NCBI GenBank assembly: GCA_965649765.1
Contig: OZ287750.1
Location: 7,068,001-7,132,000, forward strand
Reading direction: 5' to 3'
Origin: Bispira polyomma
Lineage: Eukaryota
Length of the DNA stretch: 64,000 bases
Part shown: in pieces, positions 21,701 to 58,194 of the stretch
Numbering within the stretch: position 1 is the stretch's first letter
Layout: the number at the start of each line of letters is the position of its first letter
The notes under the pieces: generated by a model
Seen by the model: the letters and a program-made list of their open reading frames with translations, nothing else
What the model was told of the DNA's origin: nothing
Databases searched by the model: none
Program-made: the position numbers and the translations under genes

Positions 21701-24700
21701 ACGACTCTCTCATTTCAAAAAGTTGCACAGACTCAAGAAAATTTTGGCAATCCGTGAAGAAGATACTTCATAAAGTTGCAGATCTGGTTCTACCGGACTG
21801 TAACAACTTCTCTGAAGCTGCAAATATATTTGGAAAATTTTCTCAGGCAAGATTGATAAAATTCGTTTGGCTTTCAAAGCATCGACCTCTCTTAACACCC
21901 CAACTCCACCATATAAACTAGCTGCCTTAAATAAGTTCAAAACACTCAACAAAGATGAAGTTCTCAAAATCATTACTTCATCCCCTTCCAAACAATGTGA
22001 GCTTGACCCTATCCCAACATCCTTACTAAAGGATTGTATAGATATCCTATTAACTCCAATCACAAACATTACAAATTACTCACTCAAAGAGGGTTGCTTC
22101 CCCAAATCGTTCAGAACTGCCAATGTAACCCCCATACTCAAAAAGCCAAACCTAGACAGAAATAACCTTAAAAATTACAGACCAGTATCAAATCTAAGCT
22201 TTGTCTCGAAATTGATTGAGAAAGCTGTTGCACTCCAAATAAATGAACACCTGTTCACCAACCATATGGGAAATACACACCAGTCAGTCTACAGAAAATT
22301 CCATTCAACTGAAACAGCACTTCTAAAAATTAGCAGTGACATCAATATGATCTTAGATAGGGGTGGTGTAGTTGCCCTTACCCTTCTCGATTTGTCTGCT
22401 GCATTTGACACAGTTGACCATAAGATACTTTCTGAATGCCTCAATTCTTGGTTCGAGCTATCTGACTCGGTTCTTCATTGGATTGAATCCTATCTTGAAT
22501 GCCGTAATCAAATCATCAGGGTTAACGGAGCTAAGTCATCTCCCTTTTTTGATCTCCCGTTCGGTGTCCCTCAAGGTTCTGTCCTAGGGCCCCTTATGTT
22601 TTCACTGTACACTACTCCCCTTGCAAGTATAGTATCCTCACACCACAATATCAACTATCACTTCTATGCAGATGACACACAGATCTACTGCTCACTCACT
22701 CCTAAAAATTGTTCCCAGATCCTGGAACAGCTTTCTAGCTGTCTGTCTTCAATTGAAACTTGGATGAGTAATTCAAAATTGAAACTCAATTCTGACAAAA
22801 CAGAATTCCTACTTATTGGCTCCAAACATCAGAGGGAAAAGGTTCTTGACTTCTTTCCTACTACTCTCCTTGGAAATAGTATTGTCCCTGCTGACAGTGC
22901 GAAGAACCTTAGAGTTACTTTTGACGCTGACTTCTTCAAAAAACATGTCTCTGATATCTGTTGTTCCTGCTACTGCAACATCCGTGACTTTCGCAGGATT
23001 CGACGGCATTTAACCCAAGAAAATGCCATCACAGTGGGAAATGCCCTGGTATCAAGTCGACTGGATTACTGTAACTCACTACTATATGGAATTGGACAGG
23101 GCAAATAAATAAGCTACAGAAAATTTAAAATAACCTGTGCAGAATAGTAAGCCATGCTGGCCCTCGCACTCACACAACTCCCCTGCTTAAAAAATTACAT
23201 TGGCTACCTATTGAGTTTCATATTAAATTTAAGGTTATTGTCCTCACTTTTAAGACAGTCCATGTACATCAACCTGCCTATTTATCATCTATGCTGTCTC
23301 TCAGCAATCTCACCAGAGGCAATCGTCTCTCCACTTCTGAGTTCTTACCCAAAAAATCAGCTGGTTCAAAATCATTCTTAGTCGCAGCACCTGCTGAGTG
23401 GAATAGCCTCCCTACCAGTCTTCGGACTGAAACAAGCATCACAGGTTTTAGAAAAAAGCTCAAAACACATCTGTATCAGCTCGCTTTCCCTTCCTAGCAT
23501 TCATTTCATGGTCACGACTGAAACTCTGATCACGAACCTTTTCCGTCTACGGGACCATTCTCTTGCACACCTACTAGGATATGCGCCACAGAGGATGCCT
23601 GGTCATCGATTGTGGCGCTATAGAAGTAAAAACATTAACATAACAGTATGAATAAAGCATGTTAAAAATGTATAATAATATCATGTCATTGACTTATTAT
23701 CATACCCACAAGAAGTACAAAGGGTTGAATTAGATTACAAAGGGTTAAATTAAAATATAAAGGGTTAACTTAGATCACAGTGGGTTGAATTAGAATACAA
23801 AGCATTGAATTAGATTAAAATAGGTTGAATAAGATTACAATGGGTTGAATTAGATTTTTTTTTGTCATAACAAATACCTGTTATGACACAGTATCACCTA
23901 GCAACCTTGCCTGACCCCTCCAGGTGACAAAGGTTTACCTTTGAAAGCTTGGTTAAGGAGCTCAACACCTAGGCAACCTATCCCATGACTCATTTCAAGT
24001 CTCATAATCACAGTCACGTATAGAGCACCAAATGTGAATCGGAGTTGTTGCAACATTATTCCCATGTTTACCACTTACTATGGGTTGAATTAGATTACAA
24101 CGGGTTGAATTAGATGCTAAAAGGTTGAATTAGATTACAATGGAGCGACAAGTGGTTGACAAGTGAAAGAATCCAGGCTTGGGTGTAAACTGTGAAGTCG
24201 GAGGAGACGTCAATAGGGATGCTGTCAGACTATAATCCTGCACACATTAACATTGATGCTCAAGCTTCTTGTTTGGTTTCAGCATAACTTTCAATTTATT
24301 TTCGATTTCTCATACCATTTTTAAACTGTATTTACTATTTAGTTCTACAGAAATTATTAAATATGGTCATTAATTTGCATGGTGACTTTATATTTTTTAA
24401 AAGCAGTGGATTTTTCCATAGAAAACAGATGTGTTTTATAACCTCGTGTTGCAACTTCAGAGTCAACTCTCCTCTTGTCTTTTTGGGATGCTGTTTAAAA
24501 GTACAAAAAATTATTTAGTTCAGTTTTAGCTTGTTTATTAGGACAGAGTAACCTTACAAGGCTTTAGTGAAGTCAGCGAAATTCTACAAAACATCTGTGC
24601 AATATTCAACAAAAGGCTTGTATATATGTATATTACATTGTAGAATAAAGACCCAGACTACTCCTGTGCCTATGTACAGCTTCAAACTGATACAGGCCTG

Positions 24701-41499: not shown

Positions 41500-41885
41500 C
41501 ATTTGGACTTTTGAAATGGCACGGAATGTTTGACCAAATATAACTAATTGAAGATGCTTCGCTCATAGACTGTGGGCCATTATCTTTTGTAAAGAAACGT
41601 TATTGAACGCTAGGGTTGCACCAGATTTCCAGAACATGTGGAAACCGCGATATGCATCAATGTTTACGTGTTGAAGGACTTTCTTAGGAGCAGTTCTGAT
41701 GTGTGATGCCACTAAGAGCAGGTGTGTAGGTCAATCTCTGGATTTAAGGAAAGCCGTCAGTGCTTTAACTGGGCATAGATGTGGAATAGAAATGGTTGGT
41801 AAGTGGACAATATGAGTATTGGATCTATTTTGCATGTTCTTGGCCCATTTTGTGAAAACATGTGCCCCAGGAGTCCTGAAATAAA
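41500..41885 (-). pseudogene. Relic of a DIRS/Ngaro-type tyrosine recombinase
   Basis: Minus strand encodes KWAKNMQ...VHLP.....LCPVKAL and then RGFHMFWKSGATLAFNNVSLQKIMAHSL*, a decayed form of the HxxRxxGAT...HGxW recombinase motif. Confidence 0.7.
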
Positions 41886-42443
41886 ATCCTGTCGCAACAT
41901 ATCTCTTGTAGAACTTTAAATTTTCAGAATTCTCTAAAAAACAAACATTTGACCACTTTTTTACATATCTCTCTCTCTCTATATATATACATATATATTT
42001 ACAGGTATACACGCAGATGTACTATGTGTACTATAATTTTGTATATTGGTAAAAATTATGTGGATGTATTATGTCGGGCTTATATATACAATTTAATAAC
42101 ATGTTTGTTAAATATGTTTATCATAATTTTTCTGTGATGTCACCCTGTAAGGTGCAGTTTTGTGAGCTGTTTGCAACCTCTTCCCACTGCACAGGGTGTC
42201 TGAAAAATGATTTAACAGGAGGAATTAACCATATTTAATTAAAAAAAAAAAAAATATTTACTTCTGCTGTTAGGAGCAATATTCAACATCCTCAGGAAAC
42301 CATAAAATGCCAGAATATGGATCTAAATAAAAGAGGGTCCTTCAAAATGTGGCACGCTTGTGAAATAATCTACAGGTGGTTAACCTCAAATATCCCTTTT
42401 GGAAAAGCCTAAAAGAAGAGCTGTGAGCTACACTTCTAGTAAT

Positions 42444-43117: not shown

Positions 43118-44352
43118 ATGGCCCAAATGACCAGCAACGCCAACTTCTGCGGGCACACCTGGCGATAAGGATTTGCCAAAACCAGGTGGTTCTCTATGTT
43201 CAAATGAGGCAGCTGCAGGAGTGAGGCGCCACAGGAGATTCTATATAAGACCATGGTTACTCAGAAGGCCCGTTTATGGCCACCATGATAGCCTACTGGC
43301 CGAGCTGTGCCTGGAAGTTCTTCAGGCTTTTAAGAACTACATCAGGATGGAGCCTGCTCTCTTCAATGAAGTGATGGCGAGGGTGACTCCACTGATAGAG
43401 AAGGAGACGACCTTCTTCCGCTCACCAAGCTCTCCTGGCTTGAAGCTTTCCCTGACCTTGAGGTATCTTGCCACTAGAGACTGCTATGCAAGCATGTAGT
43501 ATAACTTCCGTGTAGCCAAGAACAAGATCTGCTTGTTCATCTCGCTGGTGTGTGAGGCTATCTATTCCTCTTACAAGCAAGAAGTCCTGAAGTGTCCAGA
43601 CAATCCCCCAGGATTGGAAGCAGAAGGAGGAAGTCTTCCACCAGCGGTGGAACTTCCCACATGCAGTGGGGGCCTTGGATGGGAAGCATGTCTCGGTCAA
43701 GTGCCCCCCAACTCTGGCTCGTTCTATTACAATTACAGGGGGTTTTACTCCATAGTAATGCTTGCGTTAGTGGACGGAGACTACCAATTTCTCTGGGTGG
43801 ATGTGGGGTGCAATGGCAGCTGTTCTGACGCCCAGATTTTCAATGGGTCAGACCTCAAGGTAGCCATGGAGGGGGATACTCTTGGGTTACCACCGGCAGA
43901 CGAACTACCAGATCACGACAGGCCCACACCTTACTTCAAGCTGGCAGATGATGCCTATTCTTTGAAGACCTGGCTCATGAAGCCCTTCAGTGGCTGGCAT
44001 CTACATCGTGAAGAAAGCATCTCCAACTACAGATTGTCAAGGGCCAGGCGTGTGGTTGAGATTGCCTTTGGGATACTCGCCATTGGTTCAGATGTCTGTG
44101 GACCACCATGCCCCAGGTACCACCTAATGTCACCAGCATCGTGTTAGCCTGTGTGACACCCCACAACATCCTCAGGCGCAGATATAGAGAAGTACACCAG
44201 GAACTGCTCAACCACGAAGATGACCAGCACAGGCTTGTTCGTGGTGCATGGAGGAATGACCAAGAGTTGGTGAACATGAACCTAGCTAGAGGTGGGAATG
44301 CGGCCAGTCAGGCAGAAATGAGGCAAAGACTCTACCTACGGCACTACATGAC
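43118..44352 (+). pseudogene. Degenerate PIF/Harbinger DDE transposase (HARBI1-like)
   Basis: Motifs across three frames: IRPWL, F.NYIRM, KL.LTLRYLAT, GALDGKHV, YYNY.GFYSIV.LALVD, GSCSDAQIF, ADDAY.L..WLMKPF, NYRLSRARRVVE.AFGIL. Internal stop at 43497-43499 and frameshifts. Confidence 0.9.
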
Positions 44353-52985: not shown

Positions 52986-54884
52986 AGAAAAAGATATCCA
53001 AAATAATTATAGCATGTACATTTGACAAAATATATAACATTTAGATATGTACTTGTTAACGTCACTGCCAAAGCCTATACAAAATACAATGACCAAGTAG
53101 AAACGAACAAGAGGAGAATGGCCTGGCAGCCATATCATGATAATGCCACTACAAAGCATGTTACTAACGAGTCCAAAAATAGTGACCAAGTCACTAGTTA
53201 GCGGTGAAAATTAACAAGGACACAGTCACTACATGGTTGGTCTTCAGTTGCCGATAATCCAAAAAATAGAAAGATCAGAGAATGCTGTTTAATTAATTTG
53301 TTTCTAAATCCCAAAATAAGAGATTTGCTAGCAGAACTGGTGTCCGTTAACAGGAAAAGTACGCCATCAGGACCTTTGACACTATATAACCAATCCTTTC
53401 CAAGTCCACATTTTAATTTTGACTCGTGACCGTGTTTATTTTTGTAGTAAAAAAGCTATACCTTTGCAAATGTGATTCTATATAATCCTTATAACAATGA
53501 AGATCATAGCTTCACATATTTTGGTATATTATTATATGGTGAATGTCATAGATATAAATAATTGTTTTGCAAAAGTTTAAATTTTTTTGGGATCGTTTGA
53601 AACACAGATTTCTCACGACAATAAAATACCAATGACTGCCACATACAATTAACAGTAAAATATGTATGCATAATATAAAGACTACTACCTCAGTCAATAT
53701 TTAATGAATTTTTATTCTGTAAAAAGGGTCAGAAAGTGTATTAATTTTTATTTCAAATCATGTAACTTTTGAAATTTTAACTTAAGTAATAAGAGGGAAA
53801 TCATAATATGATCAATGCATATTCATCTCCAAACTTTTAAGATTTTTACGATTTCTTCACAAAGCTAAACTAATAATCATAGGATCTGGAAACTGTTTGG
53901 ACTGTTCAGGTTAAATATTGATGAAGATAGAGCTATTCAATGCAGTAAAATATGAAGAAAACTACCGCCATATACCAGGATATTTTGGTGATACCAATTC
54001 ATCGGTTTCATTATGTCAGCTAACGTCATTTCATTGTCTGTCTTTCAAGGGCTGCGTTTTCGCTTCTGGGTTTAAAATGAATGACTATTCATTAGATTAA
54101 TGAGGCGAAACCCCAAATAGAAGCATATATATGTTTAATATTTGATTTTAATAAAAATATTTTATATTATTGGCACAGAAAACGTGAGCACATACTGCAA
54201 AGACAGCCACGTGAACATATCTACTCTTCATCCGGAACTGATTATACTGTCGTAAACAGGCTTGTGTCTAGACATAAGGCTATAAAATTCTGAGTTTTCG
54301 TGAGAATAAATTAGCAGCAGGATAGTGATCGGATGTTCGGCAGATCACTTGTTTTTACTCTGTACTCTACTTTCATTCAGAAATATATATAATGAAGACA
54401 TACACCCATCACACAAGATGCACAAAACAAAACATAAGACTAACCAACTAGTCATAACAAAGCAGTATACTTGGAAGACTCCAACTAACTGAAATAATCA
54501 GACAAATAACCAGTCTGACTTAACAACCAAATAGTCTCCTACGACCATCTCTTAATACAACAATGCAATCATGACTTAAAGACAGTTCTGTCCCCAAATT
54601 CAACATCTTCATATTACATATTTAATACACTATTTGTAAAAAATAAAAGTTTTAAAATTCAGAAAATAATTGCTTGGCCGTGCTATACAAGCTTTTCACA
54701 ATCTTCAGATGATTCTATCACAAAGTAGATCAACATAATAATCACATTATACATCCATAAATTGAACTTTTTGGAACACAAATACTTAAATTCAAGAATC
54801 TATGTATCACCCCTTGCTAACAAATCTCCACTCTATAAGTGGCCATAGTGAAGTTTTGTAACATTTTCAAGAAATAGGAAGTTT

Positions 54885-55076
54885 ACCATCTCCAACGAAA
54901 ACACTACTATAGTTGGAACCCGGGTCCTATGGCACATAGTCGCCTAGCAGTGAAGGTTCCCAGCTGCAGAGCTGAATTCCCTGGTAGCCCACACCAGGGG
55001 GTAGTTTACGGCTGGGAACCAGCACCACACGGACATAGGTTCAAACCCGTTAGTAGTGGCATGCGGGCTATCTAGG
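54885..55076 (+). other. Structured non-coding repeat element, copy 1 (rod-like fold with two candidate pseudoknots)
   Basis: Nested complementary segments (see findings); colinear homologue at 56935-57130. Confidence 0.6.
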
Positions 55077-56934
55077 TAGTATTTCCTTAGTTAATTTCTA
55101 AGCATAAATGTCACATGAATGTGAGTGTAACTTAGTTCACTCATGTCATAAACTGGCCCTAAATCTCTCTTAGTGACGACTTCAGAGTATATGTGGCAAC
55201 AATCGCCTAATAAAATTCTCAAAATTTCTTAACGCTGTAGTAAAGGGGAGGAGGTGAGAAAATGTACGTGTTAACAGTTCCAAAATGGGGGACCACACCT
55301 ATAAAGTAGGTTGTTTGGCAGATTTATTACTTTTATTTGCGATTCTACTGAGTGGAAACGTGTTTACTCCAGGAAAAAGGCTCATTCGATTGGGTAGATA
55401 CTAGAAACAAATAATTTTTGGTATCCCTGAATCAGAATGGTTTTGCATCAGTGGAATACCAACATACAAAAAGTGGTACCATCCCACCCCTGGCGAAAAG
55501 TAATGCATCCACAACTAATTGTGTAGAAAAGGAAAACATAGAAGCAATTATCAACTGTTTGTTTTAGATCTAGTAAACTTTTGAACTAAATTTGGGACAA
55601 TGTCTAGACTTAGCCCTTTTGTGAATACGGCACCAGCTCACAGAAATGTTAAACAAAATGTCAATATATAGCAAACATGTAACAAGAAGACAGTGACCTT
55701 GTGGTCACAAATCTCGGAGACATGTATCTATTTGTCAAACTGTCTACTTAAAAGTAAGCCAATATTATCTGTCTATTTGTCAACGTAAAAGTCAACAAAA
55801 GAAATATCTGTCTACCTAGAACAAAATGAGTAGAATCAATGATTTTGGTTGAAAGGTTCTGGTTATTGTATAGTCATGGGATACAATATTTTGGTCACAT
55901 TCAGTTGTCTTTATTAAAGCCAGTGGGTAAGTTTCAAGTTTAAGGCTGGTTTTAAAAGTGATAAGGCAAGGCAGTGATTTTATGGTTTGAGGTCTCTTTT
56001 TTTACTGTAGTTGTTAGTATAAAAGTATATATACAATTTAGGGTAAAATGTCAAAAGACAGATTTAAAAATAGATGAGATTTTTAAAAGCCCATCACAAC
56101 GTGTCATATTCTAACATGACACAACTGTGTCCACGTCCACGATTCTGATTGGCCTACAGCCTCGGTAAAAATACCCGTGTACACATAAACGGAAACAGAC
56201 CAATGACATCTGTGACATACTGGATGCCCCAAATGAATATAGTTCCTTCAATAACGCAATTATAAAGTAAAAAGAAGCTGGAACCAGGTAATAATTTTAA
56301 TTTGTCATATTATAATAGGAATAACCTATTCGAAAGCTTGGATCACAGTAATTTTTACCTTTGTGTTACTATGCCTCCAATCGTGGTAAAAATTACTGTA
56401 TACCGAGCTTTGTCATTGGTTATTCCTATGACAACAAACAGACAACTGAAACAACAGCAAAAAAGACTAGCCTATAACAAGCAGCGATTTGTATTTAAAT
56501 GCTGAGAATAATTAAAAAATAATGCTTATCAATTAAGCCATCACAATGTGTCATAAAACACAAAGAAACCCTAAAACTATAAAATACGTTCATATTATGC
56601 AGCGATTCAATACAACTGCTAACATATTAATGGAACACCAGTAATCTATTAAAGCCATGCTTAATCAGTAAGCGAAAGAATGCCCTCATGGCCAAAAGTA
56701 AGTACATTCATTCTAAGCAGTGATTCTATACTACTGCTAACATACTCATGCTAAGAAAATGTCAGTTATTTTAACAATGTTGCACCAGTAAGTAAAAGAA
56801 AGCTCCTATAGCCAAATAGGTACATTTATACTTTGCATCGATTTCATACACCTGCTGAAACTCTACAAGAACCCTTTATGGGTCCATAACGGACACATAC
56901 AAGCAAATTGTTGCACCAGATAACCTAAATACCC

Positions 56935-57130
56935 ACCATCTCCAACGAAATCCACCACCATGGTTAGAACCCAGGTCCTATGGCACCTAGTTGCCTAGCA
57001 GCAAAGGTTCCCAATTGCAGAGCTGAATTCGCCGGTAGCCCACACCAGGGGGTAGTTGCAAGCTGACAACCAGTACCACACGGACCAGGGTTCGGATCCA
57101 TTAGTGGTGGCATGCGAGCTATCTAGGCGA
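56935..57130 (+). other. Structured non-coding repeat element, copy 2
   Basis: Colinear with copy 1; followed by ~800 bp of hairpin-rich, GC-richer sequence. Confidence 0.6.
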
Positions 57131-58194
57131 GTACAGTGAGAGTGTAAATTTTGTTTATAACTACCATAAATGTGCCATAAGCTGATGTGTGGCATGTGTA
57201 CAAGCCAGTCATAAACTATACATACATATGTTTTGAAAATTACACAATAGTTGTGGAAAGGGAAGGTGGTTTGAAAAAGTATGCGTTTCCTTCACTGATC
57301 ATTATTCCAATATGGAGGGCCCTAACTTTTGGAGGGAAAATTGTTTACCAAGAAGCAACCTAATTGGTCAGTTTTGTGTAGATGGACAGATCGAATTATG
57401 GTCAGATCTGCTATCAGGGATTAAGGTTCTTAGCAACTTTAGTCTGTACAACTGAACTAGCAGACCCTTACTAGGTCGTGCTATGCCTAAAATTAGGTTC
57501 ATCATTTGATAATTGCTTATATCTAACAAACACCCAGAAACTAGACCTAGTGCATCGGAGAACCGATGCATATTTGCATCCACCAGAAAGACAAAGCACC
57601 CTAGGTAGCAAGCACCCTAGCTAGCATCCAAGGTAGGAGCCTATGATTTCCTATAGGGCATTTATGCTTAAGCCTTAAATCGCACAAGTGGGTTTCACAT
57701 TGCAAACATGTGGGAGATAGGCACTTTAAAGTTTGGCCTACCCGTTTGACCTTGCACGAGGGCGACCTTCCTGTTTCTAGAGGTCGGGGAATTAAGTTGG
57801 GGTACTTTTAAAAAATATTCAACATGTTGAATATCTTTGCCGACCTTCCCGACCACTCCGTTTTTGCCCCCGGACCAATATGGACACACCCTGGACCTCA
57901 AAATCAGGAAGCTCAGAGATCAAATCAGCATAGTGGAACCACCATTTTACCGATGGGTGGCAAAATATCTTCGTGTTTATTTTACCGACAATTGTTGTTA
58001 TAATAACCTCTTCGTTAATTATTATTATATCAATATCTTGTAAATGGGTACGTCATTTTAGTCTTTGCCGTTTAGCATCACCAATTTGTTTACTATTGTT
58101 TAAACTAGTTCTCTGTCAAAATATACTTTTACGGCATTGTTTAACCAGTCTCCAGTTCCATTACTAGCTTTTCTAAAGTGTAGGCAAGTGATTA

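Follow-up and report, generated by a model that had tools for sequence, protein, structure and literature searches.

A GC-rich module of about 195 nt, present twice in a 64,000-nt stretch of the Bispira polyomma genome (hereafter the window, C3:7068001-7132000 of a 1.04 Gb genome), is probably a conserved, cis-acting, rod-shaped domain of the non-coding end unit (A2-spacer-B2) of a Ngaro-like retrotransposon. The rod is a real hairpin structure that has been maintained through evolution, and its carrier is a Ngaro-like tyrosine-recombinase (YR) retrotransposon of the DIRS order, which we file as a variant because its A2 repeat is not directly followed by B2. An earlier note on this DNA, made by eye, took the repeated element for the structured RNA head of an undescribed mobile element family. 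The module is indeed a structured part of a mobile element, but it is neither the head nor the 5' end, and the carriers, being Ngaro-like, belong to a kind already described.

The twofold repetition reported in the note was confirmed, the window containing two direct copies of the module with 83% identity over 175 nt and a spacing of 2051 nt (Table 1). These are not the two ends of one element. They belong to two separate ORF-less units that lie 2 kb apart by chance, both of them solo or non-autonomous and from two different subfamilies (A and C). The unit around copy 1 matches positions 210-1073 of the 1290-nt unit of locus L028, as well as loci L002, L004, L011, and L019, and the sense strand of the element here is the minus strand of the window. 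The unit around copy 2 is homologous to loci L024 and L023 over module-relative positions -1033 to +551, and its terminal tail is common to all subfamilies and of the same kind as repeats A1 and A2 of the autonomous locus L091. The spacer of this second unit also contains a 50-nt inverted repeat (window 56310-56434; 80% complementary, 25-nt loop) upstream of the 118-nt tandem repeats. No YR or RT coding sequence was found by tblastn within 1.5 kb of the window modules.

Table 1. Features of the two end units in the window and of the full-length element at locus L091 (positions are relative to the sequence named in the second column).
Feature	Sequence	Position	Strand	Remarks
Truncated ORF-less Ngaro end unit, subfamily A, around copy 1	Window	54403..55279	-	Spacer fragment, both terminal repeats missing
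Module copy 1	Window	54885..55085	.	Rod core 54902-55058; folds on both strands; nhmmer E=6e-65 against the 66-copy profile
Purine-rich GGGGAGG-type motif, copy 1	Window	55242..55264	+	About 160 nt past the module; common to subfamilies
ORF-less Ngaro end unit, subfamily C, around copy 2	Window	~55903..57489	-	Right (A) end intact; left end undefined
118-nt repeat, three tandem copies, in subfamily C spacer	Window	56582..56868	.	Self-matches
Module copy 2	Window	56936..57134	.	Rod core 56952-57110; folds on both strands; nhmmer E=1.6e-61 against the 66-copy profile
Purine-rich motif, copy 2	Window	57255..57277	+	Position homologous to the copy 1 motif
Terminal part of repeat A, outer end of copy 2 unit	Window	57406..57489	-	Short palindrome, then GTGCTATG end
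Repeat B	L091	1-125 and 1151-1275		98% identical; B2 cut by locus end
Module	L091	497-632	+	Between A2 and B2
Repeat A	L091	870-1085 and 6629-6847		99% identical
Phage_int_SAM_4 (YR)	L091	1467-2177	-	E=2.6e-6
RVT_3 (RNase H)	L091	2223-2888	-	E=7.4e-6
RVT_1	L091	3030-3323	-	E=1.2e-7

The window region as a whole is a transposable-element mosaic beside a host gene. On its plus strand are ORFs with hemopexin repeats (1707-2258), with an RVT_1 reverse transcriptase domain (21867-23108), and with a DDE_Tnp_4 transposase domain (43533-44147). A tyrosine-recombinase gene fragment lies on the minus strand at 41566-42402 and is 49% identical to the YR of locus L032 over 118 amino acids. Because no third module is detectable near this fragment, even at E<=50, it probably represents a truncated Ngaro from a different family.

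Across the genome, we obtained 738 candidate matches to the module, distributed over all large contigs, the best of them at 81-90% identity. The 22-nt apical-hairpin motif occurs 578 times with two or fewer mismatches, as opposed to zero occurrences of the reversed control, and the copy number of the module is about 600. Eight exact matches to the apical motif lie on one strand, 50-120 kb apart, at C7:24444270-24985598, which suggests a segmentally duplicated block carrying one module copy. At about seven sites (e.g., C1:14129797 and C5:17258078), a 20-mer recurs that is similar to the middle helix (right arm) and the right loop but differs in its stem sequence; these sites may represent a further diverged module family.

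Homology between copies extends past the module once the flanks are included, and the module is always found within units of 0.95-1.6 kb, 500-680 nt inside its unit. The left end of a unit begins with a CAGTTC-type motif, a purine-rich motif is located shortly past the module, and the right end, common to the subfamilies, consists of a short palindrome and a GTGCT-type terminus without poly(A). Units end sharply, in two split direct repeats of 216 nt (A) and about 190 nt (B). Searching the genome with the tail revealed paired tails 5.2-5.8 kb apart around RT, RNase H, and YR genes. Our first working reading, a SINE with a LINE-derived tail, was abandoned once the tail was recognized as repeat A of YR elements. 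Repeat annotation of this genome is affected as well, many SINE-like sequences being ORF-less Ngaro end units.

Locus L091 provides one full-length element that can be read from end to end. Its ORF pieces lie on the strand opposite to the module in the order RVT_1, RVT_3 (RNase H), and phage-integrase SAM-like domain, and the coding strand reads A1-ORFs-B1-A2-spacer-B2, with B1 abutting A2 at position 1085 and the module inside an A2-B2 spacer of 745 nt; the corresponding spacer in solo units measures 0.55-1.1 kb. The RNase H and YR ORFs are adjacent with no room for a domain between them, and no methyltransferase match was obtained in Pfam for this decayed copy. Absence of a methyltransferase separates Ngaro from DIRS1 and PAT. 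Two further loci have recombinase or RNase H sequence behind the unit on the opposite strand, namely Phage_integrase in L032 (E=2.4e-6) and RVT_3 in L035. The apparent head-to-tail tandems in L032 and L035 (module-relative +450) and in L091 (1085) are the internal B1/A2 junction of full elements.

Using tblastn, we detected YR sequence at +555 to +1566 of the module in 23 of 90 loci (about 20 of them independent, from subfamilies D, E, and F), and in these 23 loci the YR is antisense to the module with one exception. YR-bearing copies account for 17 of approximately 42 in subfamilies D, E, and F versus none of 16 in subfamilies A, B, and C, and because of this absence of a recombinase from the sampled copies the latter three may be old solo remnants or non-autonomous lineages. 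ORF-less copies make up about 70% of the module copies sampled.

Because RT-RNase H-YR precede the unit on the coding strand, the genomic RNA of the element is the reverse complement of the plus-strand sequence on which the module was first noticed. A hexamer resembling a poly(A) signal is conserved in repeat B in the sense orientation of the element. All subfamilies conserve the GGGGAGG-type motif, and in L091 (844-871) it occupies the spacer edge of A2 precisely. Being purine-rich opposite the coding strand, it does not qualify as a classical polypurine tract of the sense RNA. In subfamily E, the flank before a unit terminates in CA, the unit itself terminates in ...AACA plus a variable base, and at the internal B1/A2 junction CA is present once, a dinucleotide common to both repeats.

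All of the nested pairings that had been listed by eye for copy 1 are present in its minimum-free-energy fold (-76.5 kcal/mol, z -3.8). Copy 2 was said to keep the architecture with an altered basal stem, and its fold agrees (plus strand -66.3, z -1.9; minus strand -84.1, z -3.5). Covariation was assessed in an alignment of 66 distinct genomic module copies from several subfamilies. Standard pairs form in 89.6% of cells at rod positions, and changes on both sides of a pair occur in 143 cells as compared with 50.3 +/- 5.7 in shuffled alignments, none of 500 shuffles reaching 143. The rod covariation score is 0.194 against 0.126 when shuffled and 0.04-0.07 with the partners slid. Double changes affect seven of the eight basal-stem pairs, and at pairs 38/182, 89/152, 92/150, and 94/148 the pair type switches among copies. 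Because its stems covary, we infer that the rod is maintained by selection.

The unpaired motifs are the most conserved parts of the module, at 97% in the apical loop and 94.5% and 91% in the right and left internal loops, against 73-76% in the basal stem. In the distant L091 module, these motifs are nearly unchanged while the stems have been rewritten and are still complementary (fold z -5.25). The rod is present in every sampled subfamily and is conserved more strongly than the terminal repeats of the elements themselves. Invariant unpaired nucleotides displayed on a covarying scaffold are the hallmark of a site that a protein or another nucleic acid reads.

Other parts of the proposed fold fared less well. 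The two candidate pseudoknots, which would have joined the 3' tail to regions left unpaired by the rod, show no covariation, with 65.0% of cells paired versus 65.5% after shuffling, and the complementarity is not kept in the family: subfamilies E and F, as well as L091, have an entirely different 3' partner, the 5' partners being more than 90% conserved. G-U pairs had also been thought to favor the plus strand. Mean fold energies over the 66 copies are -67.4 (plus) and -68.2 (minus), for copy 2 the minus strand gives the more stable fold, and fixed wobble positions are found for both strands, so that neither G-U counts nor fold energy favors one strand as the functional one. The module is non-coding, with no frame open in more than 17 of the 66 copies and no three-base periodicity in its variability, and no coding potential was found in its flanks.

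We propose that the rod acts in cis and that Gag/RT of the element itself, and possibly its YR, would recognize it through the invariant loops. The rod's site of action could be the sense RNA, the first-strand cDNA, whose sequence is that of the plus strand as displayed, or both, and its role may be in packaging or in initiating DNA synthesis. With 500-680 nt between the rod and the 3' end of the unit in the sense orientation, simple self-priming by fold-back of the RNA end is unlikely. ORF-less units that keep the rod would be either solo remnants of full copies, left by recombination between A1 and A2, or units copied in trans. Because CA is found at both unit ends and once at the B1/A2 junction, integration appears to proceed via a circular form joined across the CA core by the recombinase. 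As a structure of about 170 nt kept by compensatory changes and bearing invariant loops, the rod offers a concrete, testable candidate for a replication or packaging signal of these elements.

No primer has been determined for reverse transcription in this order (PMC7192593). A bolder version of the proposal, which we consider unlikely as matters stand, is that the rod supplies the cis-element so far missing for initiation of reverse transcription or of second-strand synthesis, or is part of a second transcription unit (A2-rod-B2) making a helper non-coding RNA to rebuild the ends. If true, it would constitute a replication device undescribed for any retroelement class and would explain the multiplication of ORF-less A-rod-B units. 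A tRNA primer-binding site in the conserved loops was considered and rejected; there is no multi-copy tRNA-like gene with the required 3' end, and counts were near those of the control.

It is also conceivable, although quite unlikely in our estimation, that the structure functions as DNA, either as a hairpin in the first-strand cDNA that aids second-strand synthesis or as a cruciform or junction for the tyrosine recombinase. The rod forms equally well on both strands, as such a role would have it, DIRS-1 is amplified via linear single-stranded cDNA (PMC7192593), and the first-strand cDNA, having the plus-strand sequence, would bear the fixed wobbles as G-T. Recombination maps to the B/A junction with its CA core and hence away from the module, however, and the rod is internal rather than at a cDNA end. 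Conserved mismatches on both strands are likewise unexpected in a pure palindrome.

Very unlikely, to our minds, is an independent small RNA gene running antisense to the retrotransposon, for example one transcribed by Pol III, whose product would be a plus-strand rod RNA of about 200 nt acting as primer or regulator. The A- and B-box-like motifs pointed out in the earlier note recur in the consensus, the conservation of the module is sharply bounded, three near-fixed G-U pairs lie on the plus strand, and the subfamily consensus sequences have an excess of G-U over A-C of 21 to 8. On closer inspection, the B-box-like motif is a palindrome within helix 2 that was lost in subfamily F, and the A box is a partial match only, from which a start about 20 nt upstream would cut the covarying basal stem. 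No conserved T-run terminator follows the module among the aligned copies, the two strands fold equally well, and no Rfam Pol III family was matched. ARAGORN identified no tRNA, nor was any similarity to tRNA, 5S, or 7SL found. The position of the module, 500-680 nt from the unit end, likewise speaks against a tRNA-derived SINE or Pol III gene.

A new self-cleaving ribozyme or IRES, as the note had suggested, seems highly improbable. Ribozymes are carried by other retroelement classes, and such a role would suit a structured domain that is large, conserved, equipped with invariant internal loops, and unmatched in Rfam, but the pseudoknots behind the idea lack conservation, the unit ends do not coincide with the module ends, and there is neither a conserved ORF in or past the module nor codon periodicity. 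The impression that the fold matches neither HDV-like nor hammerhead ribozymes, nor twister, was borne out: Rfam searches with cmscan at gathering and permissive settings (E<=10 over window 54500-57500, E<=1 over eight loci) returned nothing relevant to known self-cleaving ribozymes, the hairpin and VS types included, and the hammerhead, HDV-like, twister, pistol, and hatchet families were unmatched even at E<=10. A SINE that depends on a LINE and has a structured head, or a MITE (palindromic DNA transposon), for which the many copies, the common 3' tail without poly(A), and the few obvious target duplications might speak, deserves next to no credence given that this tail is the repeat A found in pairs around RT, RNase H, and YR genes, that the module and its palindrome are internal, and that the two ends of a unit lack the mutual complementarity of inverted repeats. 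Helitron ends were sought as well and were not found.

The reading that we prefer, a cis-acting rod within a Ngaro-like end unit, can be set against several known systems. Ngaro elements have the layout A1-ORFs-B1A2B2 with split direct repeats (PMC9210276, PMC4157794, PMC8547959), and elements of this kind have been reported in molluscs, cnidarians, fish, and fungi (PMC4157794). L091 agrees with them in its RT-RNase H-YR order and in the placement of the internal copies of repeats A and B downstream of YR. The present elements differ in that A2 and B2 are parted by a spacer of 0.75-1.1 kb containing a conserved, covarying rod, whereas A2 abuts B2 in the published descriptions found (PMC9210276, PMC8547959). 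We found no mention of a long A2-B2 spacer or of a rod in the Ngaro and DIRS literature that we searched, a provisional result as the founding papers of Goodwin and Poulter lay outside the search. The kind of carrier element and the solo AB repeats are already known, and the long A2-B2 spacer with its conserved rod is, provisionally, not described in the literature found.

The Ngaros of Cafeteria burkhardae are accompanied by dispersed ORF-less solo AB repeats that have been likened to solo LTRs (PMC8547959). The units described here are similarly ORF-less and bounded by A and B, and they form the greater part of the sampled module copies, but they are about 1 kb long with a structured spacer, and those of subfamilies A, B, and C may be non-autonomous. 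A YR retrotransposon whose ends are common to an abundant short non-coding repeat is also known from the VIPER/SIRE pair of trypanosomes (PMC7192593; PMC6681497). Here, too, full elements and ORF-less units have their ends in common, although superfamily and host are different and no conserved rod has been reported for SIRE.

In a tRNA-derived SINE, the 5' end is a tRNA-like head whose A and B boxes are separated by 30-60 nt, and a terminator or LINE-type tail is present. The module shares with such heads, and with vault-type Pol III RNAs, a closing stem with box-A- and box-B-like motifs. It is set apart from them by the negative ARAGORN and Rfam results, by boxes about 110 nt apart, by the lack of a terminator, and by its internal, antisense position.

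[quoted passage not shown]

More broadly, cis-acting structures are familiar from the packaging signals of retroviruses and from the 3' UTR stem-loops of stringent LINEs and R2, the latter being recognized by RT. The rod has no sequence or Rfam relationship to these RNAs, and the likeness is one of functional analogy only, yet it has the same combination of a covarying helix scaffold, invariant unpaired nucleotides, and conservation above that of the neighboring non-coding sequence.
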